Positions 2,490 to 64,000 of a stretch of 64,000 nt of DNA are shown here, piece by piece. Positions within the stretch are counted from its first letter, which is position 1. Every line of letters begins with the position of its first letter. The translations under genes were made by a program, and so were the position numbers. The stretch lies in sequence record NC_019411.1. One strand, 5' to 3'. The notes beneath the pieces are model-generated. The model searched no databases and was not told where the DNA came from. It worked only from the letters and a program-made list of their open reading frames with translations.

Positions 2490-2491
2490 GC

Positions 2492-4846: not shown

Positions 4847-4906
4847 GCGGCCTCCTTCTGTCGTTGTGTCGACATAAGCTCTAGCCGTGGTTTTCCGGCC
4901 TGTCAA
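4847..4906 (-). promoter_or_regulatory. cassette promoter (variant GACACAAC)
   Basis: TTGACA-N17-TAGAGC...GACACAAC...GAAGGAGG. Confidence 0.75.
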
Positions 4907-4925
4907 CACACAACCGCCAAGGGTC

Positions 4926-4957
4926 AAAAGAAAACCGCCGCCCCGAAGGACGGCGGT
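4926..4957 (-). terminator. intrinsic terminator
   Basis: GC stem with TTCG loop followed by TTTTCTTTT on minus strand. Confidence 0.75.
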
Positions 4958-4983
4958 CATGACAGAGCATGTCAGGAGGGACG

Positions 4984-8319: not shown

Positions 8320-8326
8320 GCTTGCA

Positions 8327-8506
8327 CTACTCCTTGATCTCGACGCTCTTGGGCGGATTGGGATGAGGAACGAAGACCAGGGCCACGTCCTGACCGCCGG
8401 TATAGCGCGTGCGCCGACTGTAGAGCCAGCCGCCTTCCACCGCCAACCGCTCGGTCACCTGACCATCGGCTTCGTCGATCTTTTCCCACTTGGACTTCTT
8501 AGCCAT
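8327..8506 (-). CDS. small hypothetical protein (59 aa, absent from ORF track)
   Basis: GAGGGG RBS, ATG 8506, TAG 8329-8327; MAKKSKWEKIDE... Confidence 0.6.
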   Translation of the reverse strand: MAKKSKWEKIDEADGQVTERLAVEGGWLYSRRTRYTGGQDVALVFVPHPNPPKSVEIKE

Positions 8507-8527
8507 CTTCCCCTCGAATTTGGCGGC

Positions 8528-8556
8528 ACCCTAGAGGAGCGTTCGAGTGTTGACAA
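8528..8556 (-). promoter_or_regulatory. leftward promoter of gcrA operon
   Basis: TTGTCA-N17-TAGGGT on minus strand. Confidence 0.55.
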
Positions 8557-8582
8557 GCACCAATGTCGCTGGCTTTCGAGTG

Positions 8583-8641
8583 TTGACAAGTCCGGTGCTC
8601 GTCTATAGGGGAGACCGGGACGACAACGAAAGGAGCCTGCC
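8583..8641 (+). promoter_or_regulatory. cassette promoter
   Basis: TTGACA-N17-TAGGGG...GACGACAAC GAAAGGAG. Confidence 0.75.
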
Positions 8642-8950
8642 ATGCGCTATGTGCTCGACTATGCCGACGACCGGGACAAGCCGGTCTACACCGATTTCCA
8701 GGCCGGCGACCGCAAGGCGGCCATCGCCAAGGCCAAGCGCCTGCTCGCCAAGGCGATCAAGACCGTCGATTTCTCGCTCCACGGGGCCTACATCTTCGTC
8801 GATCCGACGGGCGTCGCCCGCGACGTCGACGACATGATCCCGTTCGGGATGCTGAGCACGATGGCCTACGCCAGCATCGTCACCCCGTCGATGATCTCGT
8901 TCGACGACCGCGACGCCAAGGCCGCGATCGCCACGAGGCTCGCCCAATGA
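8642..8950 (+). CDS. hypothetical protein
   Basis: first gene after promoter, RBS present. Confidence 0.75.
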   Translation: MRYVLDYADDRDKPVYTDFQAGDRKAAIAKAKRLLAKAIKTVDFSLHGAYIFVDPTGVARDVDDMIPFGMLSTMAYASIVTPSMISFDDRDAKAAIATRLAQ

Positions 8951-9159
8951 TGGATCGTCAGGACGTCCAGCCCGGCTTCATCTATCGCGGCGGCAAGAAC
9001 GGAACCCTGCGTCAGATCGTGAGCTATGGGGCGACCGAGGATTTCGTCTGCTGGGCCAATCCCCACGACCGCCTGCCCTACGGCGGCTTCATCTCCACCA
9101 TCTGCACGTCCAGGACGTCGTTCGCCCGCTGGGCCGACAAGATCGAGGAAGAGGTCTGA
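8947..9159 (+). CDS. hypothetical protein
   Basis: overlap-coupled ORF. Confidence 0.65.
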   Translation: MMDRQDVQPGFIYRGGKNGTLRQIVSYGATEDFVCWANPHDRLPYGGFISTICTSRTSFARWADKIEEEV

Positions 9160-9431
9160 TGAACACCTTCTTCCTCCGGCAGACCAAGCGGGACGAGCAG
9201 GGTCGACGCTACTTCGAGTTCGTCGATCCTGACCTGACCCAGCGCCTCTATGTCCGCAAGCCGCCGGACGAATGGTCCGAGGGCTTCCCGATCGTCCTGG
9301 AGGACTTCGTCAATGGCAAGCCCGCCGGCTCCATCATCTGCCCGGCCGGAAAGAAGCGGGGCCACGGCTTCGCGGCCTTCTTCAAGGCCAACCCCAAGGA
9401 TTTCCGCAAGCTCAAGAAAGGCCGCCTATGA
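9159..9431 (+). CDS. hypothetical protein
   Basis: TGATG coupling. Confidence 0.65.
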   Translation: MNTFFLRQTKRDEQGRRYFEFVDPDLTQRLYVRKPPDEWSEGFPIVLEDFVNGKPAGSIICPAGKKRGHGFAAFFKANPKDFRKLKKGRL

Positions 9432-9694
9432 GGATTCCCCAGCCCGTCGAATTCACCGTGGCCGACCTCATCGCCCACCTTGCGACCCTTCCCCAGGACG
9501 CCAAGGTTGGCGTGCGTGGCGGGTTCGGGGGCTTCCGGCCGCTCGACGAGATCGCCCCGATCGAACTCGTCACCCTCTATGGCGAGGACGAGACTGACCG
9601 GCTGACCCTGGCGACCGCCGATCCCATCGCCCAGAAGTGGATGGCCCAGGAGTCCCGCGCTGGCGAGCCCTTCACCGCCATCATTCTCGACTAG
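9428..9694 (+). CDS. hypothetical protein
   Basis: ATGA coupling; start MRIPQP. Confidence 0.65.
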   Translation: MRIPQPVEFTVADLIAHLATLPQDAKVGVRGGFGGFRPLDEIAPIELVTLYGEDETDRLTLATADPIAQKWMAQESRAGEPFTAIILD

Positions 9695-9702
9695 GAGGAC
9701 CC

Positions 9703-9942
9703 ATGACGAACCGTGTCTGGATTGAACTCGAACCGTCCGCGACCGAGGGGCACGCCCGCGCCGCCGCCGCGTCGGCCATGCTGAAGCGCCTGGGTGTCGA
9801 CGTCGGCGTCCACAAGCCGGTGTTCTGGCACGAGCGCAATGAGCGCTACTGCTTCACGCTCGACGCCTCGGGCGTCTACGTCGAGGCCGACGACCACGGC
9901 CACTGGTACAACCTCGATTTCCTGGCGGGCGCCGATGTCTGA
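9703..9942 (+). CDS. hypothetical protein
   Basis: AGGAGG RBS. Confidence 0.7.
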   Translation: MTNRVWIELEPSATEGHARAAAASAMLKRLGVDVGVHKPVFWHERNERYCFTLDASGVYVEADDHGHWYNLDFLAGADV

Positions 9943-10330
9943 GGTCTTCCCGCCGATCCGCCCCCGCGAGGCCAGGGACGAGGAAATCCACGGCTTCGTC
10001 GTCCGCTACGGCTGGTTCTGGAACGTGACCCTGCTGAACGGCACGATCCTGGCCTTCGATCCCGACGATGTCGACCCCTGCCGCTACGGCGTGACGGGCA
10101 AGGACGACTTTCGCAACCTCGCCGGCGCGCCTGAGACGATCGCGGCCTACGAGTGCGTCCAGGGCTGGCACGCCAAGGCCAAGCACCTCTCGGGCTGGAC
10201 CGAACGTCACGACGACCGGCTCGAAGCCCTGCGGACGGCTTATCGCCGCCTGGAGGAGCAGCGCGAGCGCAACAGCCGCGCCCTGGAGGAGCACGGCGGC
10301 ATCTTCAAGTTTCTGGAAGGTCAGGACTGA
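9935..10330 (+). CDS. hypothetical protein
   Basis: packed ORF; start MSEVFP. Confidence 0.65.
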   Translation: MSEVFPPIRPREARDEEIHGFVVRYGWFWNVTLLNGTILAFDPDDVDPCRYGVTGKDDFRNLAGAPETIAAYECVQGWHAKAKHLSGWTERHDDRLEALRTAYRRLEEQRERNSRALEEHGGIFKFLEGQD

Positions 10331-51187: not shown

Positions 51188-52063
51188 ATGCCGCGCCTTT
51201 CCAACGATCGCCACGAGATGTACGCCCTGATGCGGGCCAAGGGCATGAAGCCCCAGGCCGCCGCCCAGGCCGCCGGCTTCGTGGCCGGCTCGTCGATCTA
51301 CGCCGAACTGGAGAAGGACCCCGAGGTCCAGGCGCGCGCCCAGGAACTGCTCGACGAGAACAACCTCAAGCGCGAGCAGATGCGCACCGCCGCCACCGAG
51401 GCGGCCAAGGTCGTCGGTCAGGTCTCGGGCCTGTCCAAGGCCTGGGTGCTCCAGAAGCTGGCCGAGAACGCCCAGATGGCGGCCCAGGACGGCGACTACA
51501 AGGAGAGCAACGCCGCCCTCAAGCTGATCGGCGACGAGTTCGGCATGTTCAGCGGCGCCTCCTCGGAAGGGACCGAGGGCCAGAACGGCGAGCGCGTCTA
51601 CGACCTCGACGGGCTGAGCGCCCTTCTCGTCAAGGGGACCTCGGCGATCCCCGTGCCGCCGCCCAAGGTCGACCCCTCGGCCGCCTTCGACCTGATCGCC
51701 GGCAACGGGGCCGCCGCCCGCCGCGCCCGCGAGAGCCGGGCCTTCTCCGACGGCGAGGAAAGCGACGCGGTGTTCTCCGAGGACGCCGATATCGACGCGG
51801 TCATGGACGGGGCCTGGAGCGGCCCCAGCCCCGACGACTACCTGGAGGCCGAAAATTCGCGCCAGGAGGCCCCTGAAGCCGCTGACCGACCCGAGCCCCC
51901 GGCCGACCCCGTTCCGGCCGCTGGCGACCCCGCGCAGGAGCCGGGAACCTGGGAGCAGATCGATCCCAAGACCTCCCCCGAAGCGATCATGGCGCGCATC
52001 CAAGCCGCCGGCCAATCCCCGACTTCCAGCGATGACCGGCCCAAGCGCCGCTCCTCGCGCTGA
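51188..52063 (+). CDS. terS: putative terminase small subunit
   Basis: directly upstream of terL; N-terminal HTH-like (KGMKPQAAAQAAGF), helical oligomerisation region; C-terminal acidic low-complexity tail. Confidence 0.6.
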   Translation: MPRLSNDRHEMYALMRAKGMKPQAAAQAAGFVAGSSIYAELEKDPEVQARAQELLDENNLKREQMRTAATEAAKVVGQVSGLSKAWVLQKLAENAQMAAQDGDYKESNAALKLIGDEFGMFSGASSEGTEGQNGERVYDLDGLSALLVKGTSAIPVPPPKVDPSAAFDLIAGNGAAARRARESRAFSDGEESDAVFSEDADIDAVMDGAWSGPSPDDYLEAENSRQEAPEAADRPEPPADPVPAAGDPAQEPGTWEQIDPKTSPEAIMARIQAAGQSPTSSDDRPKRRSSR

Positions 52064-52075
52064 CCCTAGAACGCC

Positions 52076-54808
52076 GTGAGCTACTATCCGATCGAGGACC
52101 GCGCCAAGGCCCGGTCCGTCGTCAAGAACCTGCTGGACCTTCAGCGCGAGGCGGTCAAGGCCTCGCGCGGCGGCCTGATCCTGCCGCCCGACCAGAAGGC
52201 GATCATCACCCAGGTCACCGAGACCGAGGACCCGGCCCGCTGGGTCGACCTTCTGGGCCAGTTCGCCGATCGCGTCCAGACCGATCACCTCGCCCGGCTG
52301 AAGCCCCTGGCCAAGCACGACTTCAACGCCTTCTGCGAATACGTCAATCCCGAGGAGGCCCCGGCCTCCAAGTGGCACGTCTACCTGACCTCGCTCCTCC
52401 AGGAGATCGAGAACAACCACGAGCTTGAGCGCTTCGTGCTCAACTGCCCGCCCGGTCACGCCAAGCCGCTCGACGTCGACACCGAGGTCCTGATGGCCGA
52501 CGGGTCCTGGAAGCGCCTGGGCGACATCACCGTGGGCGAATACGTGGTCGGCGAGAGCGGCGCGCGCTGCAAGGTCACCGCCGTCCACGAGCAGGGGGAG
52601 CTTGCCACCCTGAAGATCACCACCGCCCACGGCCGCCAGATCATCGCCGCCCCCGATCACGCCTTCCGGGTCGGCAACACCTGGAAGGAGGCGGGCAAGC
52701 TGCGGCCGGGGGATGCGCTGTCCGTGGTCGGCGCCGCCAACCTCAACTACGACGCCAGCGGCAAGACCATCGACCACTTCGAGCTTGCCGCCTACCTCCA
52801 GGCCAAGGGCGGACGCTCCTACTTCCACCGCGTCCACAAGAGCGGGCCGAAGACCTACCGCAACGTCTTCCTGTGGACCTCCGACCACCGCGAGGCCAGC
52901 AAGATCAGCGCCTGCCTCAAGCGCCTGGGGATCGCCTTCAAGGGGCGCCTCGCCAAGCACGAGCAGGTCTGGAAGATGCGTCTGGCCACCGAATGGGGCG
53001 ACGCCCTGGCCGAGGAGTACGGCCTGGACGCGCGGATCGACGCGCGCCGGGTTCCGGCCTTTGTCACGAAAGGCGACGAGGAGCAGATCGCCCGCTACCT
53101 GTCGACCTACGCCTCCCTGGCCGGCGAGGCGCCCGACCGCTACACCATCCCGCGCATCATCCTCTACTTCAAGAACCCGGCCTTCGCCCGCGACATCCAG
53201 CGCCTGTTCGCCGTGGTCGGCGTCAACGCCCGCATCGAGGGGCGCAAGACCGGCCGCACCCGGCTGATCCTGTCGGGGCCGGACCTGGAGGCCTACTTCG
53301 CCGCCGGCCTGACCTACACCGGCCCCAACGCCGACAAGCTCGACGACAAGCGCGCGGCCTTCCCGACCTCGCCCTCGCTCCTGGCCGACACCGTCACCTG
53401 GATCGAGCCGCACGGCGTGCGCCCCTGCCGCTGCCTGACCGTCGAGGACGAGCACACCTTCATCGCCGAAGGCGTGGTGGTCCACAACTCGACCTACGCC
53501 TCGCGCCTGTTCGTGGCGTGGCGCCTGGGGCGCGATCCGCGCCAGAAGATCATCGGCGGCGGTCACTCCCAGCGCTTCGTCGAGAACGAGTTCTCCGGCA
53601 AGATTCGCAACCTCGTGCGCACCCCGCAATATCGCGACGTCTTCCCCGACGTGGTCATCGACCACGCCACCTCGGCCAAGGACATGTGGGCGATCGCCGG
53701 GCACGGTGGGCAGTACGCCGCCAAGGGCGCCGGGCAGGCCATCCACGGTCTGCGCGCCCACTTCGTCTGCGTCGACGACCCCTACCGGTCGATCGAAGTG
53801 GCCGAGTCCGCGATCGAGCGCGAGAAGATCAAGACGTGGTTCTTCGGCGACGTTGGCTCGCGTTTGTTGCCGCTCGCCAAAGTATTCCTCATCATGACGC
53901 GCTTCCATGAGGAAGATTTGACCGGGGAGATCATCAAACTCAACCAAGAAGTTCTCACCGGCGCCGACCGTTATCACATCGTTGAAGCGCCCGCCCTGTG
54001 CTACGACCCCGAGAACGACGTCCTGGGCCGGGCTCTGGGCGAAGTTTTGTGGGACTACTATGACTTGCATTATTTCAAGCGCAAGCGGTCCGAGTGGAAG
54101 TACCAAAGATTTGCTTTGGTTTATCAACAACTTGCCGACGCGGCCTCGGACACCTCCATCGCGTCCAAGTTTCAGACCTACGATCACCTGCCCCACCTGG
54201 AGCCGAAGGTGCTCAAGGCCCGGCTTGACGCGGGTCACGCCGACGAGCGCGGGCGGCCGATTCCGGACCGCAAGGAGCACTTCCGGCGGGTGGTGGTCAG
54301 CGTCGACTCGGCCAACAAGCCCGGCGCCCGCAACGACTACAGCGTCGCCCAGGTCTGGGGGGAGACCCACGCCCGCAAGCACTACCTGATCTACCAGGAG
54401 CGCAAGAAGGTCGACATCACCGGCCTGACCGAGATGATCGAGCGGGTGGCCAAGCGCTACGAGGTCGACGCCATCCTGGTCGAAGACAAGGGCAACGGCA
54501 CCGCCTACATCCAGGCTCGGGGCCAGACCGACAGCCAGCGGCGGCTCGCCCCGGCCCCGATCGAGGCGATCCAGGTCCCGAGCACCTATTCCAAGGAGTT
54601 CCGCTTCAACGAGATCGTCCCGATGATCGAGGCCGGCGAGGTCTTCCTGCCGGGCAAGGCCCCGTGGCTCGACCTGCTGATCCGCGAAATCGGTCAGTTC
54701 CCCGAAGGCGCCCATGACGACCAAGTCGACGCCATGACGCAGTACCTCCGCTGGGCCAAGTCCAAGCGCACGCGGTTCGGCGCGCGCAAGGTCGGCTCGA
54801 TGGGCTGA
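52076..54808 (+). CDS. terL: terminase large subunit, intein-interrupted
   Basis: Walker A PPGHAK/ST split by intein; Walker B FVCVDDP; nuclease SVDSA...HDDQVDA. Confidence 0.92.
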   Translation: MSYYPIEDRAKARSVVKNLLDLQREAVKASRGGLILPPDQKAIITQVTETEDPARWVDLLGQFADRVQTDHLARLKPLAKHDFNAFCEYVNPEEAPASKWHVYLTSLLQEIENNHELERFVLNCPPGHAKPLDVDTEVLMADGSWKRLGDITVGEYVVGESGARCKVTAVHEQGELATLKITTAHGRQIIAAPDHAFRVGNTWKEAGKLRPGDALSVVGAANLNYDASGKTIDHFELAAYLQAKGGRSYFHRVHKSGPKTYRNVFLWTSDHREASKISACLKRLGIAFKGRLAKHEQVWKMRLATEWGDALAEEYGLDARIDARRVPAFVTKGDEEQIARYLSTYASLAGEAPDRYTIPRIILYFKNPAFARDIQRLFAVVGVNARIEGRKTGRTRLILSGPDLEAYFAAGLTYTGPNADKLDDKRAAFPTSPSLLADTVTWIEPHGVRPCRCLTVEDEHTFIAEGVVVHNSTYASRLFVAWRLGRDPRQKIIGGGHSQRFVENEFSGKIRNLVRTPQYRDVFPDVVIDHATSAKDMWAIAGHGGQYAAKGAGQAIHGLRAHFVCVDDPYRSIEVAESAIEREKIKTWFFGDVGSRLLPLAKVFLIMTRFHEEDLTGEIIKLNQEVLTGADRYHIVEAPALCYDPENDVLGRALGEVLWDYYDLHYFKRKRSEWKYQRFALVYQQLADAASDTSIASKFQTYDHLPHLEPKVLKARLDAGHADERGRPIPDRKEHFRRVVVSVDSANKPGARNDYSVAQVWGETHARKHYLIYQERKKVDITGLTEMIERVAKRYEVDAILVEDKGNGTAYIQARGQTDSQRRLAPAPIEAIQVPSTYSKEFRFNEIVPMIEAGEVFLPGKAPWLDLLIREIGQFPEGAHDDQVDAMTQYLRWAKSKRTRFGARKVGSMG
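52466..53488 (+). mobile_element. 341-aa intein with degenerate LAGLIDADG domain
   Basis: PLDVDTEVLMADG start; block B AAPDH; block F CRCLTVED; end VVHN followed by Ser. Confidence 0.88.
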
Positions 54809-54811
54809 CGA

Positions 54812-54880
54812 GGCCCGTTAACCACGTTTGTTAACCTCCGCCGGGGCCTTAACCCTAACACGGCGAGGGTTAACAGGTCC
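54812..54880. repeat. TTAAC-rich element, near copy of 56040-56064
   Basis: GGCCCGTTAACCACGTTTGTTAACC (1 mismatch to 56040 copy). Confidence 0.8.
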
Positions 54881-55034
54881 AGGGACCCTTCGAAATTAAC
54901 CTTTCGGGGACCCTGGGAAATCGACAGACGGGGACCCTGGCCATTTTCCGGCTGGGGACCCTGCCAAATTCATCGCCGGGGACCCTCCGAAATTCATCTC
55001 TGGGGACCCTGGCGAATTCAGAGCCGGGGACCCT
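54881..55034. repeat. 24-bp-period GGGGACCCT array
   Basis: cores at 54906, 54930, 54954, 54978, 55002, 55026 plus AGGGACCCT at 54881. Confidence 0.9.
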
Positions 55035-55054
55035 GGCGAATCATGGAGCCGACG

Positions 55055-55246
55055 ATGGCCGGATTTCTCAACCTGATCCCGAACCTCGCGCCGTTCGCGC
55101 TTTGGGGCGTCCTCCTCTGGATCGCCGCCGAGGTGGTCTGGAGCGTCTGCCTCTGGGTCTACGGCCTGCGGACCCTGTTCAAGCTGCACCGCGACGATCT
55201 GGCCGAGGCGATCAGCTTCGAGCGGGCCTTGAGCCCCTTCGACTAG
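55055..55246 (+). CDS. small membrane protein
   Basis: GGAG RBS; hydrophobic segment. Confidence 0.5.
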   Translation: MAGFLNLIPNLAPFALWGVLLWIAAEVVWSVCLWVYGLRTLFKLHRDDLAEAISFERALSPFD

Positions 55247-55329
55247 GCGCGGCCTGCCGACCTAAGTCACGGACTGTAGGTTTCATGACAAGGTGGATTA
55301 TTCCACAACGAAATCAAAGGCTTATCGCC

Positions 55330-55578
55330 ATGTCGATCCGCGCGTTCCTCCACGATCTGGCTGTCCGCTTCGTCGTTTTGGGGTGGATTTTTGCTCAAAA
55401 ACCCCAGAAATGGGCTCCAAAAGGGCATAATTTTCAGCCCATCCCGCCGGCCCAGGTCGAGCGGCAGGACCTCCGGGGGCGCGTGCTACTCCTGAGGAGC
55501 TTCGGCGTCCTCGCCGCCGCATGCACAACCATGGGCCTGTGTCAATACCTGCTCTGGCGCCGCGCGGCCATGTCATAG
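55330..55578 (+). CDS. possible small membrane protein
   Basis: two hydrophobic segments; atypical codons. Confidence 0.3.
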   Translation: MSIRAFLHDLAVRFVVLGWIFAQKPQKWAPKGHNFQPIPPAQVERQDLRGRVLLLRSFGVLAAACTTMGLCQYLLWRRAAMS

Positions 55579-55722
55579 ACTAGGGCTTTCGTGACAGCTT
55601 CACGATCCCGTTACCGGACAACCCCATGCCTCACCTGGGTTTCTGGCTCTCCGCCGCCTGCATCGCTCTGGCCTGGGCGATCTGGGCGCTGCGGCGGCTG
55701 ATCGGCCCACCACCGCCCACCT

Positions 55723-55756
55723 GATACCGGCGGCGCGAGCCCGCGCCGCCGGTATC
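55723..55756. other. 15-bp perfect hairpin
   Basis: GATACCGGCGGCGCG-AGCC-CGCGCCGCCGGTATC. Confidence 0.7.
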
Positions 55757-55858
55757 GCCCGGCCAAAGCATCATATATGAGCCCTTAACCCCTCTAAGGT
55801 CTCATATATGCGACCTTACGGCCCTCTTGACGCCCTCGTGTTCCTCTGAACGCGGGGG

Positions 55859-55960
55859 CGTTTTGACGTCGGCGCATTTCCAACTCAACGCGCGGCCGTT
55901 TTGACGTCCGAGCGTTTTGACGCGAGCGCATTTTCGATTCGACGGGCGAGCGTTTTGACG
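55859..55960. repeat. CGTTTTGACG x4 (54-bp tandem duplication)
   Basis: copies at 55859, 55897, 55913, 55951. Confidence 0.85.
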
Positions 55961-56004
55961 TCCGAACGTTTTTCAACTTGACGTCGTTTCATTTACCACG
56001 AGCG

Positions 56005-56220
56005 CCTTAAGGTTAACCGCCGAGCCTGGGAAGGGTTAAGGCCCGTTAACCATGTTTGTTAACCCTCAGGCCGTTAACCCATCGCCCGTTAAGGTTAACG
56101 CACCCGCCCCCATTAACCCTTAGCGTGTTAAGGTTAACGCCCCGCCCGCCAACGTTAGGGTTAACAGGCCGTTAAGGTTAACAAACATGGTTAACGGGCC
56201 AGACCGGCGTTAACCCTAAC
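56005..56220. repeat. dense GTTAAC/TTAAGG array with 25-bp perfect inverted repeat
   Basis: GGCCCGTTAACCATGTTTGTTAACC 56040-56064 and its reverse complement 56176-56200. Confidence 0.9.
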
Positions 56221-56304
56221 GGCCGGCGCCCAGGCGTTCGCCGGCGAGCCCAGGCCCAGGCCCTACCGGGTATGACCTGCCGGCCATACCCGGTAGGGCG
56301 CGCC

Positions 56305-56562
56305 TCACGCGTCCGCGTCGGGCGACGCCGCCGCGCCGTATTCGTGGTCATTCCAGAGTATGCCCAGAATTTCGTCAGGCCCGAACGAAGGCAACAGGGT
56401 TTGCAGGGCGTCGTATGTCTCGCGAAAGGCGCTCGCGTCGTCGTCTTGCATCCAAACCGACTCCTTGCCGGCCTTGTCGCGGAACGTGTACGCCGCGCCG
56501 TTCCCGTAGCTGTCGAGGGCGAAGCGTTCGCCCTCCGAAATGCGTAGCGGTCCTGAGTACAT
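56305..56562 (-). CDS. hypothetical protein (divergent early gene)
   Basis: TTGGAG RBS, ATG 56562; CtrA-like box upstream. Confidence 0.6.
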   Translation of the reverse strand: MYSGPLRISEGERFALDSYGNGAAYTFRDKAGKESVWMQDDDASAFRETYDALQTLLPSFGPDEILGILWNDHEYGAAASPDADA

Positions 56563-56618
56563 GGGGCGATCTCCAAGGGCGCGGGGTGCGCCGACCCGTG
56601 CAATCTGACAGCCAATTC

Positions 56619-56634
56619 TTAACAAAAGGTTACC
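56619..56634 (-). promoter_or_regulatory. CtrA-like box, leftward
   Basis: minus strand GTAA-CCTTTTG-TTAAG. Confidence 0.6.
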
Positions 56635-56652
56635 GTGAGATTTTTCTTGCCG

Positions 56653-56685
56653 TTTACTTTTTGTTAAGAATTGGGGTCTAGTGTC
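56653..56685 (+). promoter_or_regulatory. CtrA-box promoter
   Basis: TTTA-N7-TTAAG; CTAGTGTC 14 nt after second half-site. Confidence 0.7.
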
Positions 56686-56734
56686 CTCCTTGTCGGGGCC
56701 AGCCCCGGCGCTCTTTGACATTGTGAGGCAATCC

Positions 56735-56923
56735 ATGATTCCCCAAGAAATCCTGAATCCGCGCGAGCACTGGACTCCCGTCGCCTCGCGCGAGGAAGCC
56801 GACAAGATCGCCGCGCGCTGCACCGAAGGCGACCCCGTCGGCCGCTACTATGTCGAGCCCAAGGGCGCCGGCTACGCTGTCGCCTATGACGACGAGGCGG
56901 GCGAATTCGTCGCCTACCTTTAA
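56735..56923 (+). CDS. hypothetical protein
   Basis: GAGG RBS; start MIPQEI. Confidence 0.7.
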   Translation: MIPQEILNPREHWTPVASREEADKIAARCTEGDPVGRYYVEPKGAGYAVAYDDEAGEFVAYL

Positions 56924-56950
56924 CCTTTTGTTAAGACCTGACCTCTAAAC
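56920..56950 (+). promoter_or_regulatory. CtrA-box promoter
   Basis: perfect TTAA-CCTTTTG-TTAA; CTAAAC. Confidence 0.8.
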
Positions 56951-56984
56951 AGGGGTCAGGTTCAACCCCTGGAGGCCCTGCCCC

Positions 56985-57524
56985 ATGTCCGTTATCGAAA
57001 CCGCCAACCTCTCGCGCGGCCGTGTTCTCACGGTCGAAATCGACGACTGCGCTCAAGAGCCCTACGCCGACGACAAGGGCGTGCGAATCGTCGTCCTGCA
57101 TCGCCATTGGGCGAACCCCGCCGCCGGCCTGCTGGACACCGTCGAGGACGTTCAAGCCTTCGAGGCGCAGAACGCCGCGCCCGACTCCGCATGGGCGATC
57201 TTTGAGCTATGGGTGATGGACCATAGCGGCCGGACCTTCAAGGCCGGCGCGCTGGGCGCCGGAAACCCGTTCGGCGCCGGACCCTACGCGCAATGGGATA
57301 GCGGCCGGGTCGGAGTCATCGCCCTGGCGCGCGCCGAGTGGCCCGCCGCCGACCTCAAGACCGCCCAAGGCGTCGCCGACACCTACGGCGCATGGGCCGA
57401 AGGCGAGGTTTACCAATTCGTCATTTCGAACCGCCGGGGCGACGTGCTCGACTCGTGCGGCGGGTTCTACAGCGTCGCCGAAGCCCTGGCCGCCGGCCGC
57501 GACGCCGCCAAGGTGAAGGCGTGA
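56985..57524 (+). CDS. hypothetical protein
   Basis: GGAGG RBS; WDSGRVG, WAEGEVY, DSCGGFY blocks. Confidence 0.75.
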   Translation: MSVIETANLSRGRVLTVEIDDCAQEPYADDKGVRIVVLHRHWANPAAGLLDTVEDVQAFEAQNAAPDSAWAIFELWVMDHSGRTFKAGALGAGNPFGAGPYAQWDSGRVGVIALARAEWPAADLKTAQGVADTYGAWAEGEVYQFVISNRRGDVLDSCGGFYSVAEALAAGRDAAKVKA

Positions 57525-57715
57525 GGGTCGCCCGCGAAAGCTTCGCCGTGTTCTGGACCCGCCCCGGCTGGCGCGTCCAGTTTCACGCCGACATGAAACG
57601 GGCGCTGTACCCGACCGCCAAGGCCGCCGCCGACGCCTTCGCCGCCATGTTCCCGGCTGATCAGGTCAAGAGCGTGCGCGACGGTTCCGGCCGCTTCCTG
57701 GCCTTCAAGCGCTAG
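57521..57715 (+). CDS. hypothetical protein
   Basis: GTGA coupling. Confidence 0.55.
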   Translation: MRVARESFAVFWTRPGWRVQFHADMKRALYPTAKAAADAFAAMFPADQVKSVRDGSGRFLAFKR

Positions 57716-57720
57716 ACCAG

Positions 57721-57756
57721 ACGCCCCGGAAAACTTTTCCGGGGCGTTTACTTTTT
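57721..57756 (+). terminator. intrinsic terminator overlapping CtrA box
   Basis: ACGCCCCGGAAAA/TTTTCCGGGGCGT then T-rich tract. Confidence 0.7.
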
Positions 57757-57780
57757 GTTAAGGAATGGCGTCTAGTGTCC
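57747..57780 (+). promoter_or_regulatory. CtrA-box promoter
   Basis: TTTA-CTTTTTG-TTAAG; CTAGTGTC. Confidence 0.7.
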
Positions 57781-57824
57781 CTCTTGCCGCCGGGCAATCC
57801 CGCCCGGCCTTGGAGTTCTTCCCC

Positions 57825-58343
57825 ATGCCGGAATTTGTCCTAGATACGTCGGGCCAAGTCGCCCCGCCCGCCGCCGCCAAGCTTTGGCCGCACCCCCTGG
57901 CCTGGAATCAGTTGAGCGATTTTGCTCAAGGCTATATCGAGGCCCTGTTTTTCACCGAGTCGTCGCCGGCCTATGACCGCGCCGAATGGTTCGGCGCCGA
58001 GTGTCAAGAGGCCCTGACCGAAGGCACGGCGGACGGCAACATTCCGGGCGATGTCGGTTTTTCCGACCTCGCGCCCGACACCCTCAACCGCATCTTGAAC
58101 GACTGCGCCAACTTCAAGCGCGAGCACGCCGACACCCTGGCCAAGGCCTATGACCACGGCGGCGCGGCGGGCGACTATGACGAAACCCAAGCCGGCCGCG
58201 ATTACTGGTACACCCGCAACGGCCATGGCGTCGGGTTTTGGGATCGCGGACTCGGCGAGATCGGCGAGGCCCTGAGCAAGGCCGCCCGCTACAGCGAGCA
58301 AAACGCCTCTTTCGAAGAGGACGGAAAAGTCTACCTGTTTTAA
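57825..58343 (+). CDS. hypothetical protein
   Basis: TTGGAG RBS; GRDYWYTRNGHGVGFWDRG block. Confidence 0.75.
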   Translation: MPEFVLDTSGQVAPPAAAKLWPHPLAWNQLSDFAQGYIEALFFTESSPAYDRAEWFGAECQEALTEGTADGNIPGDVGFSDLAPDTLNRILNDCANFKREHADTLAKAYDHGGAAGDYDETQAGRDYWYTRNGHGVGFWDRGLGEIGEALSKAARYSEQNASFEEDGKVYLF

Positions 58344-58372
58344 CCTTTTGTTAAGACTTGGCCTCTAGGGTC
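58340..58372 (+). promoter_or_regulatory. CtrA-box promoter
   Basis: perfect TTAA-CCTTTTG-TTAA; CTAGGGTC. Confidence 0.8.
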
Positions 58373-58435
58373 GAGTTGTCCCGGCGCCGGGGCTGGAAAC
58401 CCCGGCGCGTCCATTCCGTGAAAGGAATCCATACC

Positions 58436-59188
58436 GTGTCTTTTGGTCAATTCTCCGCCGACGCCCGCGCCCCGCTGTCGAAAGCCGCCATGCTGGACGC
58501 CCTCCCCGCCGCCCGCCGCGACGCTCTGGTCAAGTCCAGCAAGCCGGCGCGCAACACCCTCGATTACACGACGTCGGACGGCGTGCGCCGCGTGCGCCTG
58601 CATGACACCGACGTCCTGACCTTCCATGTCAACGGCGCCGTCGAGATCAACACGGGCGGCTGGAATACCCTCACCACGCGCGACCGCATCAACGCTTTCG
58701 CCCCGCCTCACGTGCGCGTCTACAGCGACAAGGGCCGCGCCGTGGTTCACGCCTTGCCGGCCGGCGCCAGCGCCGTCACGTGGTCCAGCCCCGCCGCGTC
58801 CAAGCCGTTCGCCAAGCGCGCCACCGTCCACCCGGACGGCCGAATCGAAGTGGACGCCACCGTCAAGGAACTGGAGGCGATTCCTAGCCTCATCCGCCGC
58901 TATCTGGAGGCCTTCAAGGCCGGTTTCCCGTTCAACTCGTCGGGCGACCCGTGGATGACGCCCGGCGCCCTCGTCGCCCCTGAAACGGCCCTGGATTGGC
59001 TGGGCGCCGACAGCGGCAAGCCGTACCTGTTCGACTCGATCCTGTTTCACGCCCATGTCGCGGCCGGCCTTACCGAAGAGGGCGCGGCCGGCTACATGCG
59101 CGACCTCTTCCGCCACCCGGCGCGGCTGGATAAGTTCCACCTCGGCCGCATCCGGCGTTATCTCAAGCGCTGCTTGCGCGACGCCTAA
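58436..59188 (+). CDS. hypothetical protein
   Basis: AAAGGA RBS, GTG start; LHDTDV...NTGGWNTLTTRDRIN. Confidence 0.7.
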   Translation: MSFGQFSADARAPLSKAAMLDALPAARRDALVKSSKPARNTLDYTTSDGVRRVRLHDTDVLTFHVNGAVEINTGGWNTLTTRDRINAFAPPHVRVYSDKGRAVVHALPAGASAVTWSSPAASKPFAKRATVHPDGRIEVDATVKELEAIPSLIRRYLEAFKAGFPFNSSGDPWMTPGALVAPETALDWLGADSGKPYLFDSILFHAHVAAGLTEEGAAGYMRDLFRHPARLDKFHLGRIRRYLKRCLRDA

Positions 59189-59195
59189 GACCCTC

Positions 59196-59229
59196 CGGCC
59201 GCGCCTCCCCTGGCGCGGCCGTTCTTTTT
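59196..59229 (+). terminator. intrinsic terminator
   Basis: CGGCCGCGCC/GGCGCGGCCG then TTCTTTTT. Confidence 0.8.
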
Positions 59230-59240
59230 CCGTGTACGCG

Positions 59241-59275
59241 TTAACTTGTTGTTAAGACTTTATCCGCTAGTGTCC
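59241..59275 (+). promoter_or_regulatory. CtrA-box promoter
   Basis: perfect TTAA-CTTGTTG-TTAA; GCTAGTGTC. Confidence 0.8.
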
Positions 59276-59318
59276 CTTTGCCGGCGCACTTCCGCGCCCT
59301 CACCTGGAGATTTTCCCC

Positions 59319-59939
59319 ATGGTCCGCCTGATCAAAGCCAAGACCGCCGCCGAACAAGCCGAAGCCCTCGCCAGCCTGCGCAAGATGATCAAGCCGGGCG
59401 ACACGGTTTATCCCGTGCTGCGCCACGTCTCGACCTCCGGCATGTTGCGGGTCATTGACCTGATTATCCCGGTCACCGTCACCCAAACCGACACCTTGCC
59501 GGCCGATGCGCGCGGCTTCAAGATCGGCGTTCAAGCCTATGCGACCCCGCCGGAACGCAACGCCCCCCGCGCCTTCTCAACCGGTACGGTTTCGGCTTTC
59601 GACGCCGACACCGTGACCATTACCTATCAGGCCACCGCCGACGGCCGGGGCGACGCGGAGTCGGTGACGTGGCCCCGTGGTCAGGTCAAGTTCTACCGCA
59701 AGAGCACGCGCCCCGGCGTCCGCTCGATCGGCTGGCTTGCCGCGAAGGCCATGGGCGACACTTTCGACGCCGACCGCCAAGGAATCAAGGTCGGCGGGTG
59801 CGGGATGGATATGGGCTTTCACCTCGTTTACAGCCTGGGCCGCACCTTGTGGCCGAAGGGGACGAAAAAGCCCCATGGCTCGCGCAATGGCGAGCCCGAC
59901 CGCGACGGCGGTTATGCGCTGAAACATTCCTGGCTTTAA
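59319..59939 (+). CDS. hypothetical protein
   Basis: GGAG RBS; LRHVSTSGM...GCGMDMGFHLVY blocks. Confidence 0.75.
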   Translation: MVRLIKAKTAAEQAEALASLRKMIKPGDTVYPVLRHVSTSGMLRVIDLIIPVTVTQTDTLPADARGFKIGVQAYATPPERNAPRAFSTGTVSAFDADTVTITYQATADGRGDAESVTWPRGQVKFYRKSTRPGVRSIGWLAAKAMGDTFDADRQGIKVGGCGMDMGFHLVYSLGRTLWPKGTKKPHGSRNGEPDRDGGYALKHSWL

Positions 59940-59970
59940 CTTTTTGTTAAGAGTTTAGCCGCTAATGTCT
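59936..59970 (+). promoter_or_regulatory. CtrA-box promoter
   Basis: perfect TTAA-CTTTTTG-TTAA; GCTAATGTC. Confidence 0.8.
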
Positions 59971-60017
59971 CCTTGCGGCCGGGCAATCCCGCCCGGCCGC
60001 ACTGGAAAGCCAAGCCC

Positions 60018-60290
60018 ATGACCCGCGCTCAAGCCCTCGCCGAAATGAACGCCCTCCCCGGTATCATCGCCTCTTTCGAGCGCGAGACGGGCGAATATCG
60101 CGTCACCCTGCGCTTTGGCCCCCTGCCGGGCGGCCGGGGCGCTCAAGAGTGGATGCACAAGCGCCGCGAAGCCGTCGCCAGCTACAGCGACGACAAGGCC
60201 GACGCCCTGGCCACCGCCCGCGACATGTCGGCCCGTTGGGAAGCCATGACGCCCGCGCAACGTGATCACCTGTACCGCCACCCCGCGTAA
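60018..60290 (+). CDS. hypothetical protein
   Basis: start MTRAQA. Confidence 0.7.
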   Translation: MTRAQALAEMNALPGIIASFERETGEYRVTLRFGPLPGGRGAQEWMHKRREAVASYSDDKADALATARDMSARWEAMTPAQRDHLYRHPA

Positions 60291-60320
60291 CCCTTCCTTA
60301 AGACCTCGCCGCCTAGGGTG
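60287..60320 (+). promoter_or_regulatory. CtrA-box promoter
   Basis: GTAA-CCCTTCC-TTAAG; CTAGGGT. Confidence 0.65.
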
Positions 60321-60354
60321 GCGGGGTCATCAACCCCCGCAAGGATCGCCCGAC

Positions 60355-60633
60355 ATGCGCAAGCCCCTCACCCAAGAGCAAAAGGCCCGCCGCCGCGCCC
60401 AACGCCGCGCCGCCCGCCTCGCCTGGAGCGACGAACGCCGCGCGGCCGAATACGCCCGCCAATCGCGCTTTTTCCTGATGATCGCCGAACGCGCCCAAGC
60501 GGCGGGCGACGCCAAGGAAGCCGCCCGCCTCGCCACCGTCGCCCAACGCAAGGTCACTAACTGGCGCATGGCGCAAGCCTGCGCTCGAATCAACGCCCTG
60601 GCGGTTCACGCCTGGGCTTCCGTCGCCGCCTAA
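60355..60633 (+). CDS. basic Arg/Ala-rich hypothetical protein
   Basis: AAGGA RBS; start MRKPLT. Confidence 0.65.
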   Translation: MRKPLTQEQKARRRAQRRAARLAWSDERRAAEYARQSRFFLMIAERAQAAGDAKEAARLATVAQRKVTNWRMAQACARINALAVHAWASVAA

Positions 60634-60645
60634 GGAGCCGCAACC

Positions 60646-60969
60646 ATGCCCCCGATGACTCACCCTCACGCCCTGGCCTTGATCGCGCTCGCCGAAAAGG
60701 TCTTGCCCCTGACCCGGCTGGACCCGCTGGACCAGCGCGCCGCCGCTGTCGACCTGATCGGCGATCTTTACAGCCTCGCCGACTCCATCGACGCCACCGC
60801 CGGCCACTTGGTCGAGGCCGTCAACGGCGCCTTGCGCGACGGCTGCGAGGGTTACGCGCCCAAGAGCCGCGCCGCCGCCGCTGTCGCCACCGTCCGCGCC
60901 GACGAACTGCGCTCCGCCCTGGAAGCGTACACCGAAGCCGCCGCCCTGGCCCTGCCGAAGGTCGCCTAA
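60646..60969 (+). CDS. hypothetical protein
   Basis: AAGGAG RBS. Confidence 0.7.
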   Translation: MPPMTHPHALALIALAEKVLPLTRLDPLDQRAAAVDLIGDLYSLADSIDATAGHLVEAVNGALRDGCEGYAPKSRAAAAVATVRADELRSALEAYTEAAALALPKVA

Positions 60970-60972
60970 GCC

Positions 60973-61641
60973 ATGTCGCAACGCTACCGCCTCGCGCCCT
61001 CCGCCCGCGTCTCCAAGACGCTTTCGGACCTGCTTTATGCGGCGTCGGAAGTCGTCGCCACGGCGGCGCAATATGAGACGACGCCCGCCGGTCAAACCAA
61101 GCTCGCCAAGATGCGCGGCGACCTGATCACCGAAAGCGCCGGCGCCCTTGTGCGCAAGCCGCCTAGCGCCGTCCTCGCAACCCTCGTTTGGGTTGTCGAA
61201 CTGGCGCAAGCCCGCGCCACGGAAAACGACTTCGGCAACGCTCAAGAGGCGCTGGACGAACACGACGCCTTAGCGTTCGTCGCCGATTGGCTGGAAGCCG
61301 AAGGCGTGGACGTGAGCGACATTCGCGGCGCCGCGCCCTCCGCCGAAGCCTTGGCCGAACTGGTCGCCCGTCGCGACGCCGAACAAGAGGCGCTGGACGC
61401 CCTAGAGCGCCCCGTTCCCCTCATCGCGTCGGATAAGGCCTATGCGCTTGCCGAAGTCTTCGGCGGGCTGATCCCGGCCGCCCTGGCGCTGGGCTATGAA
61501 TTCCACGTCAGGCCCGACGGGCTCGCCCCGCCGCACTACGTCAGCCGCAACGGCGTTCCCGTCGCCGCGTACTACGCCGACAAGGAAGCGCTCGCGCTGG
61601 ACACCCTCGCCATTCACATTGACCAAGCCAAGGAAGCCTAG
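60973..61641 (+). CDS. hypothetical protein
   Basis: packed ORF. Confidence 0.7.
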   Translation: MSQRYRLAPSARVSKTLSDLLYAASEVVATAAQYETTPAGQTKLAKMRGDLITESAGALVRKPPSAVLATLVWVVELAQARATENDFGNAQEALDEHDALAFVADWLEAEGVDVSDIRGAAPSAEALAELVARRDAEQEALDALERPVPLIASDKAYALAEVFGGLIPAALALGYEFHVRPDGLAPPHYVSRNGVPVAAYYADKEALALDTLAIHIDQAKEA

Positions 61642-61644
61642 ACC

Positions 61645-62355
61645 ATGACCGCCCCCGCCCTGACCCGCGCCGCCGCCCTCGAAGCCCTGGAAATCGCCCG
61701 CGCCAACCTCGCCGCCGGTCCTGCCCTGGCCAAGGCCGCCGACGGCGTGACGAATGTGTGTCACTTCGCCCTGACCCGCGCCGCCATGCTCAAGGCCGCC
61801 AACATGATCGCCGCCGCCGCCCCGGCGCTGGACCTGGGCGCCGTCTCGACGGCTGATCTTATCGCCGAACTCTACCGCCGCCCCGTGGCGCTTTGCGTGT
61901 TCGAAGCCGCCGACGTGTTGAGCGAGGCGCCCGGCGCTTTCGACGACGCCGACGACGCGGGCCAATGGCTGGCGAGCAAGTCCAGCTATATCGGCGACGC
62001 GATGAGCGGCGCCGGCTGGGACTCGGTGCGCTATCACCTGACCGCCGACGGCCGGGCGACCGATGACGACGAGGAAGCCGACGACGAGGGCGACGCCCTC
62101 CCCGTCGCCGTGACCTTGGAGCAAGGCGACGCGGTCCCCGTGGTCGGGCGCTTCGCTACCGTGGCGGAGGCTGAAACCTTCCTGGCGTCGCCGATCCGTG
62201 ATCAAGCCGCCCTGGAGGCCGGCCGCTACGGTATCGACGCGCCGCACGGCGTGGCCAGCGACGACGACGCCGTGACCCTGGCGCGGCGCCTGGGCTGGGC
62301 TGGCGTGGCGAACGCGGCCGAAGCCTTGCGCTTCCTGGCCAAAATCGAGCCTTAA
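61645..62355 (+). CDS. Ala-rich hypothetical protein
   Basis: AAGGA RBS. Confidence 0.7.
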   Translation: MTAPALTRAAALEALEIARANLAAGPALAKAADGVTNVCHFALTRAAMLKAANMIAAAAPALDLGAVSTADLIAELYRRPVALCVFEAADVLSEAPGAFDDADDAGQWLASKSSYIGDAMSGAGWDSVRYHLTADGRATDDDEEADDEGDALPVAVTLEQGDAVPVVGRFATVAEAETFLASPIRDQAALEAGRYGIDAPHGVASDDDAVTLARRLGWAGVANAAEALRFLAKIEP

Positions 62356-62546
62356 GCCCGCCTAAGTCATCAAACCGACCGTCTATGACTTGTCACCGGC
62401 CGAACTCTTGCCCGGTGACAGTCTGGGCAAGTAAAGCTCACTCTTGATTTTATGACTTAGCGCAAAAGATTGAAATTGCTCGAAAAATTCCTCGAAGCTC
62501 ACAAAGTCGTTTTCTGGCTGCTTTTGCTGGCCTGTTTGTGGCGCTT

Positions 62547-62580
62547 TTAACGGTTTGTTAACCCCTGGCCCTCTAGGGTC
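62547..62580 (+). promoter_or_regulatory. CtrA-box promoter
   Basis: perfect TTAA-CGGTTTG-TTAAC; CTAGGGTC. Confidence 0.85.
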
Positions 62581-62633
62581 GAATTCCCGGCGCGGCAATC
62601 CCGCCGCCCGGCCTTCCTTCGGAGCTTCTGATC

Positions 62634-63080
62634 ATGTTCGCTTCCGTGACCCTCCCCGCCCATGACGCCCAAGGCCTGAGCCTCGAAACCGTCCACATGG
62701 TTTTCGCCCGTGAACTGGCGCAACACTTCGACCACGTGATTTCCGCCCCCGTGGTCGAAAGCTGGACCGACGAGGACACCGGCGCCGTGCAAGAGCAAGC
62801 CGCCGTCTGCTTCACCGTTTCGGCGACCCCGGCCGCGTGGGAAGCCAAGGGCGGGCGCCTCGCGCGCCGGCTGGAAAACCTCGCCGCGCGCTATGCCGCC
62901 GACTGCGACGCCCCGGCCCTGACCGTCACCCACTGCGACGGCTCGACGGTCTATGTCGGCGCTCTGGAAGCCCTGGCGCGCCCCGCCCCGGTGCAAGGCC
63001 CGACCCGCGACGCGGACCCGGCTTTCCTCCCCCGCCAGCGCGAGGACAAGGCCGCCCGCTTCGATCGCCTGACCGCCTAG
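62634..63080 (+). CDS. hypothetical protein
   Basis: GGAG RBS behind CtrA promoter. Confidence 0.7.
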   Translation: MFASVTLPAHDAQGLSLETVHMVFARELAQHFDHVISAPVVESWTDEDTGAVQEQAAVCFTVSATPAAWEAKGGRLARRLENLAARYAADCDAPALTVTHCDGSTVYVGALEALARPAPVQGPTRDADPAFLPRQREDKAARFDRLTA

Positions 63081-63097
63081 CCCCTGGCCTTCCCCCT

Positions 63098-63132
63098 AGC
63101 GCACCGCCCCTAGAAAGGCGGTGCGCTTTTCT
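63098..63132 (+). terminator. intrinsic terminator
   Basis: AGCGCACCGCC/GGCGGTGCGCT then TTTCT. Confidence 0.75.
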
Positions 63133-63139
63133 GTGTCTG

Positions 63140-63174
63140 TTTACTTGTTGTTAAGGAATAGCCTGCTAGTGTCC
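63140..63174 (+). promoter_or_regulatory. CtrA-box promoter
   Basis: TTTA-CTTGTTG-TTAAG; GCTAGTGTC. Confidence 0.7.
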
Positions 63175-63223
63175 CCTTGTCGGCGGACGCATCCCGCGCC
63201 CGCCCCTTTCTGGATCGCTCCCC

Positions 63224-63616
63224 ATGGCTCGCCCCTCTGACCTGCTCAACGTCAACGCCGCCCGCGTCCTGGCTTGCCTTGAGCCTATCGCCGCCGCCGC
63301 TAAGACCGCCCCGGCCGCCGACCGCGCCGCCCTTTCCTACCTGCTCGACGCTGGCGAGTATGTCGCCGCGTGGCGCCGCAACCTCACGGAAACCGACCGC
63401 CGCAAGGCCTATGGCGCGGCCTGCGCCGCCGAAGCCCTGGCGCTCGCTAACGCCTATCAGCCCGCCACCCTGCAAGGCGGCGCCGTCCGCCGCGCGCTGG
63501 GCGCCTATGCCGCCGCCCTGAAGGTCCTGCTAGACGGGGAGCCGGTCAAGGCGGTGCGCGCCGCCGAAGGCGCGGCGCTTTCGGTCCGCGCTCGCTACGC
63601 CAACACCCGCCTTTAA
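63224..63616 (+). CDS. Ala-rich hypothetical protein
   Basis: behind CtrA promoter. Confidence 0.7.
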   Translation: MARPSDLLNVNAARVLACLEPIAAAAKTAPAADRAALSYLLDAGEYVAAWRRNLTETDRRKAYGAACAAEALALANAYQPATLQGGAVRRALGAYAAALKVLLDGEPVKAVRAAEGAALSVRARYANTRL

Positions 63617-63645
63617 CCTCTTGTTAACACCCCCCGGCTATGGTC
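63613..63645 (+). promoter_or_regulatory. CtrA-box promoter
   Basis: perfect TTAA-CCTCTTG-TTAAC; GCTATGGTC. Confidence 0.85.
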
Positions 63646-63670
63646 GGGGGGTCGCAAGGAGACACCCGAC

Positions 63671-63865
63671 ATGACCCGCCCCGGCCCCGCCTCGCTCCTG
63701 ACCCCGCAAGCCCGCTTCTCGTCGCCGCGCGTCCTGATCCTTCCGGGCGCGGCTCCCATGCCGATTCGCCAGCCGCGCGGCCTTTGCGCCGTCGAGTGCG
63801 TCGCCCTTGGCGTGACGCTGGGCGCGGCGCTCTACCTCGCCGCCCGCGTGTTCGGTCTGGTCTGA
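63671..63865 (+). CDS. small protein with C-terminal TM segment
   Basis: AAGGAG RBS; hydrophobic C-terminus. Confidence 0.6.
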   Translation: MTRPGPASLLTPQARFSSPRVLILPGAAPMPIRQPRGLCAVECVALGVTLGAALYLAARVFGLV

Positions 63866-64000
63866 CCAGACCCCCGCCCGCCCCCGGTCGGACCGGTCGG
63901 GGGTGTGTCCCATAATGACACACCCCCCGCCACCTAGTATCTTTTTTGATTCGGAGGGACCCAAAGGCCCCCTACGTTAACCATTTTTGGCGGCGCCCCC

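Follow-up and report, generated by a model that had tools for sequence, protein, structure and literature searches.

The stretch of DNA analysed here (the window, 64,000 nucleotides in all) comes from the genome of Caulobacter phage CcrSwift, a phiCbK-like giant siphophage (Dolichocephalovirinae, Shapirovirus). The 6 kb around the repeat array described below are 100% identical to record JX100809.1 (207216-213216), record positions being obtained by adding 155216 to window positions, and the window ends at the right end of this 219,216-bp linear record. Three annotated genes on the + strand set the scene. The small terminase gene terS (gp324) occupies 51188-52063 in the JX100809.1 annotation. 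It is followed by terL (gp325, 52076-54808), annotated as an intein-containing large terminase, in which Pfam Terminase_6C, intein and LAGLIDADG domains are found; its stop codon is at 54806-54808. Further on lies gp326 (55055-55246), which is annotated as identical to gp001. It encodes a 63-aa hydrophobic protein of the family phrog_7368 (function unknown) and is the first gene of the direct terminal repeat (TR).

The left boundary of the TR, which is also the left physical terminus, is at 54030, within codon 652 of terL (repeat_region annotation; Gill et al. 2012), and the right physical terminus is the end of the TR at 64000 (annotation; Gill et al. 2012, PMC3556154). The 9,971-bp TR fills window 54030-64000, that is record 209246-219216, and is identical to record 1-9971; in the left TR copy the sequence runs ...GGCGCCCCC up to the boundary and CGGCGCCTA beyond it. 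The two genome ends of phiCbK-like phages, as reported by Gill et al. 2012 (PMC3556154), are precise and non-permuted, the left one lying in terL codon 652 and the right one in non-coding DNA about 10 kb downstream. According to the same source, the ends of phiCbK were mapped by tag/end ligation, matching coverage breaks were seen in Swift, Magneto, Karma and Rogue, and packaging was inferred to start at the left boundary. When the left and right cut sites were compared with each other, no convincing common motif was found besides a G+C-rich context. One observation made nearby deserves mention. Two RNA-Seq assemblies from a phiCbK-like relative show a branch in the contig graph at 53824-53853, a place 177 bp ahead of the mapped left terminus, where a short contig runs on into about 25 G. 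This may be an artefact of sequencing, or molecules may end there.

Between terL and gp326 lies an array of seven co-oriented units of the form [A/G]GGGACCCT-nnn-RAAT.. (54881-55049, + strand), which follow each other in steps of 25, 24, 24, 24, 24 and 24 bp. An earlier note on this DNA, made from the letters alone, had described six cores at an exact 24-bp period and one more 25 bp earlier, and all of these starts are confirmed: GGGGACCCT begins at 54906, 54930, 54954, 54978, 55002 and 55026, and AGGGACCCT at 54881, 25 bp ahead of the first GGGGACCCT. Tandem Repeats Finder sees the array with a period of 24 (5.7 copies) and also with a period of 48. The placement just after terL is borne out as well, the array starting 73 bp past the stop codon of terL and 851 bp into the TR. 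So is the remark that the variable spacers often contain AAATT or GAATT, with RAAT(T/C) standing four bases past the core in six of the seven. The array extends over 851-1019 bp inside the left end, up to the first TR gene, and the GGAG ribosome-binding site of gp326 (55045-55048) falls within its last unit. All six copies of GGGGACCCT in the 64-kb window belong to the array (after dinucleotide shuffling the mean count is 0.88 and the highest 4), and no other 9-mer of the window is repeated as densely, the six copies per 200 bp comparing with four for the next best. Two other tandem repeats lie downstream of the array, at 55858-55972 and 56058-56147; one has a 54-bp period with CGTTTTGACG boxes and the other is a GTTAACCC/TTAAGGTTAAC array.

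Several familiar kinds of repeat were considered for the array and rejected. It is not a coding tandem repeat, for no + strand ORF spans it and the 25-bp steps (Swift, Magneto) break any frame. It is not a CRISPR array, its repeats being 9-nt cores with related spacers. The units are not CtrA boxes (TTAA-N7-TTAA), as no such dyad occurs in them and a single TTAAC is present, in the spacer of the first unit only; the TTAACC boxes next to the array are an element apart. The RNA structure of the array is weak (z = -2.25), and a weak fold of this kind is to be expected because the core is quasi-palindromic.

The array is common to a wide group of phages with genomes of 205-280 kb. The consensus from 51 units is CC-R-GGGACCC-T-nnn-(R)AAT(T), with steps of 22-26 bp except for one 33-bp and one 28-bp step in Gurke. 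There are 1+5 units in phiCbK, 1+6 in Magneto (with one 25-bp step) and six each in Rogue and CcrBL10; their cores are invariant and their 15-nt spacers drift. Colossus and CcrPW have six units with steps of 22-25 bp and, in addition, a solitary extra unit directly after terL. The Brevundimonas phages Bajun, Marchewka and Gurke carry six, nine and seven units, respectively, with steps of 23 bp in Bajun and 24-26 bp in Marchewka. The Bertelyviruses CcrSC and CcrBL9 have five units, with one or two genes between terL and the array. Outside the Caulobacterales phages, five units are found in Sphingobium phage Lacusarx, 262 bp past terL, and four in Citromicrobium phage RXM, 64 bp past terL. The Erythrobacter phages L02 and XM05 have a looser form of the array, and Roseobacter phage DSS3P8 has no array after terL. 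A different repeat, GAGGCCATTTT / GGCCATTTTCGCTATCG, takes up the long non-coding stretch behind terL, with about six copies, in Lacusarx (L256:3950-4200), RXM, L02 and XM05. Perfect tandem arrays of yet another type, CGGGACCCTCGGGGAACGGGGAGC units in 18-40 copies with a 25-26-bp period, are present in three related IMG/VR genomes of about 130 kb (L052, L053, L086).

The array is thus shared by all Dolichocephalovirinae genera tested and by Sphingomonadales phages, in flanks that cannot be aligned. TRs of different genera are only about 1-12% identical according to PMC9437464, and the conserved array therefore amounts to a clear phylogenetic footprint. The characterization of the array as iteron-like is well founded: its cores are invariant and its spacers drift, there are four to nine copies, the unit is unique in the genome and fixed in orientation, and the whole is conserved in unalignable non-coding DNA. 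The periodicity proposed by the earlier note is conserved in the looser sense of 22-26-bp steps across relatives, but phasing at exactly 24 bp is particular to a lineage. When the whole genomes of Swift, phiCbK, Rogue and Colossus are scanned, the composite unit is confined to the array, which each TR copy has once, and to the + strand; a control pattern gave 0-2 matches in the same scans.

The array also keeps its place relative to terL. A search by DNA pattern alone found at least six uncultured IMG/VR contigs with the array (L030, L085, L082, L032, L074, L068), and all six have a phiCbK-type TerL gene (33-63% identity) upstream of it on the same strand. Altogether the array lies downstream of a phiCbK-type terL, in the same orientation, in 21 of the 21 cases examined, with TerL identity going down to 33-38%; these are Swift, phiCbK, Magneto, a Karma-like contig (L105), Rogue, BL10, Colossus, PW, SC, BL9, Bajun, Marchewka, Gurke, Lacusarx, RXM and the six uncultured contigs. 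Such a linkage could reflect inherited synteny rather than function. The left terminus itself moves relative to the genes, being inside terL in Swift and SC and beyond terL in Colossus, and the array stays 0.35-1.9 kb inside it (851 bp in Swift and phiCbK, 354 bp in Colossus, about 1.9 kb in SC). RNA-Seq assembly contigs (X3, X4) of a phiCbK-like relative span the array and are contiguous with the 3' end of terL and with gp001; the array of this relative is short by exactly one 24-bp unit. No phage was found in the raw-read runs X21 and X23. Three-core GGGACCC scans of viral and genome contigs gave matches of which those listed were mostly Gly/Pro-type coding repeats, and Caulobacter was not among the matches listed in the bacterial scan.

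The earlier note had also pointed to a GGGACCC at about 63956 next to a GTTAAC, and both are there, at 63956-63962 and 63976-63981. The former belongs to a unit of the terminal type, AGGGACCCAAAGGCCCCC (63955-63972, + strand), in which GGGACCC begins 44 bp short of the genome's last base. The window holds no excess of the 7-mer (17 copies seen against 19.5 expected), and therefore this copy looks like chance as long as the window alone is considered; its meaning is shown only by the relatives. In about ten genomes the GGGACCC of AGGGACCCAA starts 44 bp before the right boundary, the set comprising Swift, phiCbK, Magneto, the Karma-like contig L105, Rogue, BL10, RBC63, Ccr29, CcrSC, C1 and PW. 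RB23 and BL47 have it at 38 and 45 bp, respectively. The TRs of all these genomes are between 9.7 and 30.2 kb long. In Swift, phiCbK, Rogue and CcrSC the forward GGGACCC copies of each TR are those of the array and one more at -44 bp; the positions of unit and boundary are 9927 and 9971, 10243 and 10287, 10277 and 10321, and 23902 and 23946, respectively. CcrSC keeps the 44-bp offset though the DNA that separates its unit from the boundary is mostly different. Each TR has essentially one copy of RGGGACCCAA, and in an alignment of eight right ends (A3) the longest invariant block is AGGGACCCAA, followed by the boundary motif GGCGCCTA. The right ends used here are experimental in phiCbK and come mostly from coverage or annotation elsewhere. 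A second terminal-type unit, GGGGACCCAAGGCCCCC, lies about 171-182 bp past the right TR boundary, in unique DNA directly behind a predicted terminator (at 10142 in the Swift record, 10458 in phiCbK and 10503 in Rogue), so that in a concatemer the right cut would be bracketed by two units. A conserved hairpin at the terminal unit was considered and rejected, its consensus energy being -3.1 kcal/mol. Since neither the array nor the terminal unit convincingly folds into a conserved single-strand structure, a protein site in duplex DNA is the simpler reading of both.

A few genomes depart from this regularity or extend it. In CcrBL9 (MH588546.1) the single AGGGACCCAA is an exception, being found at 22745, about 486 bp beyond the annotated TR (22,260); the annotated left boundary of this phage is not at the codon homologous to that of SC and Swift either, and its TR annotation may be off. 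By the offset seen in the other phages, its right end would be expected near 22,790 of the left copy. In Colossus (JX100810.1) the homologous module is at 17194, about 0.5 kb beyond a right boundary that is approximate and indistinct; Gill et al. 2012 (PMC3556154) place the right end at about 16,700 and describe the boundary as indistinct. If the terminal-unit rule is applied to its sequence, the right end of Colossus is predicted near 17,238. Bajun (ON529858.1), whose ends are unmapped, has a terminal unit at 100639, 15.8 kb downstream of its array, and the same rule would put its right terminus near 100,684 and give it a TR of roughly 16-17 kb. Lacusarx and the contig L085 also have terminal-type units far downstream of their arrays.

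Both elements have boxes resembling CtrA half-sites as neighbours. A cluster of TTAACC/GTTAAC boxes (54818-54874, + strand) lies directly upstream of the Swift array, and in phiCbK, Magneto, Rogue, Bajun, Colossus, SC, Lacusarx and RXM, too, a corresponding box (CGTTAACCAYGTTTGTT) comes before the array. Another box, TTAACCAT (63977-63984, + strand), stands between the terminal unit and the right end; it is kept near the right end in Swift, Rogue, BL10, Bajun, Colossus and PW, and not in SC and BL9. TRs of phiCbK-like phages are described as rich in CtrA boxes in PMC9437464. It may be speculated that the TTAACC(A/C)T boxes next to both elements are accessory sites for a host factor.

What could be the role of these elements? 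Their anatomy, uniqueness, orientation, conservation and fixed offsets are direct observations. We propose that the GGGACCC units are cis recognition elements for packaging and for processing of the terminal repeat, most likely read by the terminase and organised as a two-part system, and we put the chances of this proposal at about even. The seven-unit array would be a platform, similar to cosB or pac, on which a ring of TerS assembles. TerS bound there would recruit TerL and set translocation in the rightward direction, and initiation would be coupled to the cut at the left boundary within terL. The single terminal unit (AGGGACCCAA..) would be similar to cosQ. It would be met by the translocating terminase at the end of the next TR, where it would direct the final cut to a point about 44 bp downstream. 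Steps of 22-26 bp and four to nine units would suit the flexibly tethered DNA-binding domains of a ring oligomer. Both of these mechanistic roles, as well as the identity of the binding protein, are what we infer from the arrangement. The link to packaging and genome ends suggested by the earlier note gains from position, with the array 0.35-1.9 kb inside the left end and a related unit about 44 bp from the right end, but the array is not itself at a terminus: in Swift the mapped left end is 851 bp upstream of it, and there is no GGGACCC near the left cut. This distance is an objection to our proposal, as cosB and pac are much closer to their cuts than the array is to the left one. Another is that the array of the Swift group reaches as far as the first TR gene, which fits a regulatory role as well.

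The prime candidate for the reader of the units is the helix-turn-helix of an oligomeric TerS. The terS product matches phrog_11494, terminase small subunit (E 3e-181), and its residues 1-137 match the solved small terminase of Pam5 (21di, nine chains, E 3.5e-14), for which no structure paper was found in the literature searched. Judged by these matches, Swift TerS is a genuine small terminase. The part of TerS that is conserved across genera is the N-terminal helix-turn-helix. The putative recognition helix, however, differs between the phages of Caulobacterales and Sphingomonadales, and GGGACCC is kept in both; moreover, TerS of the array-less DSS3P8 is no more divergent than that of RXM. 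Co-variation of TerS with the units therefore gives no support to TerS as the reader.

The last point would agree with binding of the units by some other conserved DNA-binding protein, of the host or the phage, that acts on the whole TR, for instance in pairing of the repeats, protection of the entering end, or anchoring and partition of the genome. The units are near both ends of the TR, the terminal unit is 44 bp from the end that would leave the capsid first if packaging starts on the left (as in Gill et al. 2012, PMC3556154), and the core persists across host orders in the way the host-read CtrA box does. We regard this explanation as unlikely but worth keeping in mind. No candidate protein was identified and no motif of a known alphaproteobacterial regulator could be matched, and the strict co-orientation with terL together with a cut distance constant to the nucleotide fits a reader linked to a nuclease better. 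An operator or enhancer of early transcription, where a phage or host regulator would bind cooperatively and switch the first TR operon (gp001 onward), is in our estimate rather unlikely too. It would agree with the overlap between the last unit and the gp001 ribosome-binding site in the Swift group, with the small + strand ORF close behind the array in Bajun, Marchewka, Gurke, SC and BL9, and with the location of the array amid CtrA-type boxes known to drive TR-encoded genes (PMC9437464). RNA-library contigs of a relative do run across the array, but such contigs cannot show where transcription starts or ends, or on which strand. Colossus, PW and Lacusarx, moreover, keep the array without a plausible + strand gene for 1.2-1.4 kb, the unit is upstream of no other gene, and a promoter scan of 54500-56500 revealed no sigma-70-like promoter.

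Neither that operator nor iterons of a replication origin, bound by a phage initiator, would explain the constant 44 bp between a related unit and the right terminus. Origin iterons are suggested by the direct repeats themselves, which lie in a repeat-rich non-coding zone (GC is 0.60-0.62 at 55-57 kb and about 0.66 overall), and by the AT-richer DNA that comes after the array in Lacusarx and Colossus. The Swift array, though, goes straight into a gene with neither an AT-rich unwinding element nor a DnaA box alongside, GC at 54-55 kb is 0.64, no initiator gene was recognised among the neighbouring genes, and an AT island elsewhere (48.2-48.8 kb, with GC of 0.58 at 48-49 kb) is itself a candidate for the origin. 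Taken together, this makes an origin at the array improbable. We find it very hard to believe that the array is just a functionless tandem duplication or a coding repeat. Slippage would indeed give the variation in copy number that is seen between close relatives. It would not account for invariant cores beside diverging spacers across TerL identities of 33-100%, or for the same core, orientation and place being kept in unalignable DNA, and the coding version is opposed by the lack of a + strand ORF through the array and by the frame-breaking 25-bp steps already mentioned.

If the GGGACCC units are indeed read by the terminase, the kind of element is not new, a terminase recognition site, and what is most likely new is an array deep inside a long TR combined with a ruler-like unit at the other boundary, both held across host orders. 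Neither the array nor the terminal unit is described in the searched passages of Gill et al. 2012 or of Mascolo et al. 2022, and no description was found when the literature was searched for the motif and for repeat arrays in the TRs of phiCbK-like phages. A bolder version of the proposal is that the GGGACCC elements are the first defined cis set for a terminase that makes long TRs (10-30 kb), with a loading array and a ruler unit at about 44 bp, from Caulobacter jumbo phages to Sphingomonadales phages, and perhaps with TTAACCAT boxes as host accessory sites. We advance this version only tentatively and would sooner expect some part of it to fail. If true, packaging or processing of the repeats would be coupled to the cell cycle of the host through these accessory sites.

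There are several reasons why these elements deserve attention. How terminases recognise and generate long non-permuted direct TRs is poorly understood, even for T5, SPO1 and the phiCbK group, and phiCbK is a widely used tool phage of Caulobacter. A motif that marks both sides of the TR, at a distance constant to the nucleotide from one end, offers direct targets for EMSA, footprinting and mutagenesis. The terminal-unit rule also serves as a practical predictor of termini in unmapped relatives, and the TR annotations of CcrBL9 and, with its indistinct right end, Colossus possibly need to be re-examined. Arrays with the core reversed, (A)TGGGTCCCC, were also noticed in two unrelated uncultured viral contigs. 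One (L049:5150-5360) is situated between an Sf6-type terS and terL, and the other (L118:1120-1200) immediately upstream of a Terminase_2-type terS; a third contig with such an array, L106, has no terminase nearby. We mention as a lead that GGGWCCC arrays next to terminase genes may extend beyond the phiCbK group.

We know of other systems in which terminases or other proteins use comparable sites. In the cos region of lambda (cosQ-cosN-cosB, with the R-sites for gpNu1 in cosB), as in the arrangement proposed here, several sites for the small terminase, putative in our case, lie in the packaged DNA downstream of the initiation cut, a separate short element is located some tens of bp ahead of the cut that ends packaging, and the sites are linked to the terminase genes. 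Lambda also has an accessory host-factor site alongside, for IHF, to which the CtrA-like TTAACC boxes would correspond by position only. The differences are that lambda has one nicking site and 12-nt cohesive ends, whereas here two cuts 10-30 kb apart produce a long TR, and that cosB is within about 150 bp of the cut, whereas the array, with its four to nine direct repeats in steps of about 24 bp, is 0.35-1.9 kb away. The pac sites of SPP1 (pacL/pacC/pacR), P22 and P1 are likewise unique cis sites of repeated short boxes in or beside terminase genes, and they are read by a ring-shaped TerS with an N-terminal helix-turn-helix, which is only a candidate here. Headful phages, however, make one specific cut per concatemer followed by imprecise ones, in contrast to the two precise ends of phiCbK-like phages, in which, moreover, the pac-like array is not at the cut.

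T7/T3 and T5/SPO1 resemble the phiCbK-like phages in having non-permuted direct TRs with short repeat arrays near the boundaries, and they need signals at both boundaries, as would be the case here too. The T7 repeat is 160 bp long and its processing is tied to transcription by T7 RNA polymerase, unlike the situation in phiCbK-like phages. To our knowledge, the recognition elements of long-repeat terminases (T5, SPO1) have not been defined, and there is no sequence-level family that the GGGACCC units could join. Finally, origin iterons of plasmids and phages and the centromere repeats of the ParR type share with the array the design of tandem co-oriented 20-24-bp units with an invariant core, a variable spacer and a variable copy number. 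Unlike them, the Swift array has no initiator or partition genes, AT-rich element or DnaA boxes beside it, and a unit at a fixed distance from the genome end is something these repeats do not predict.
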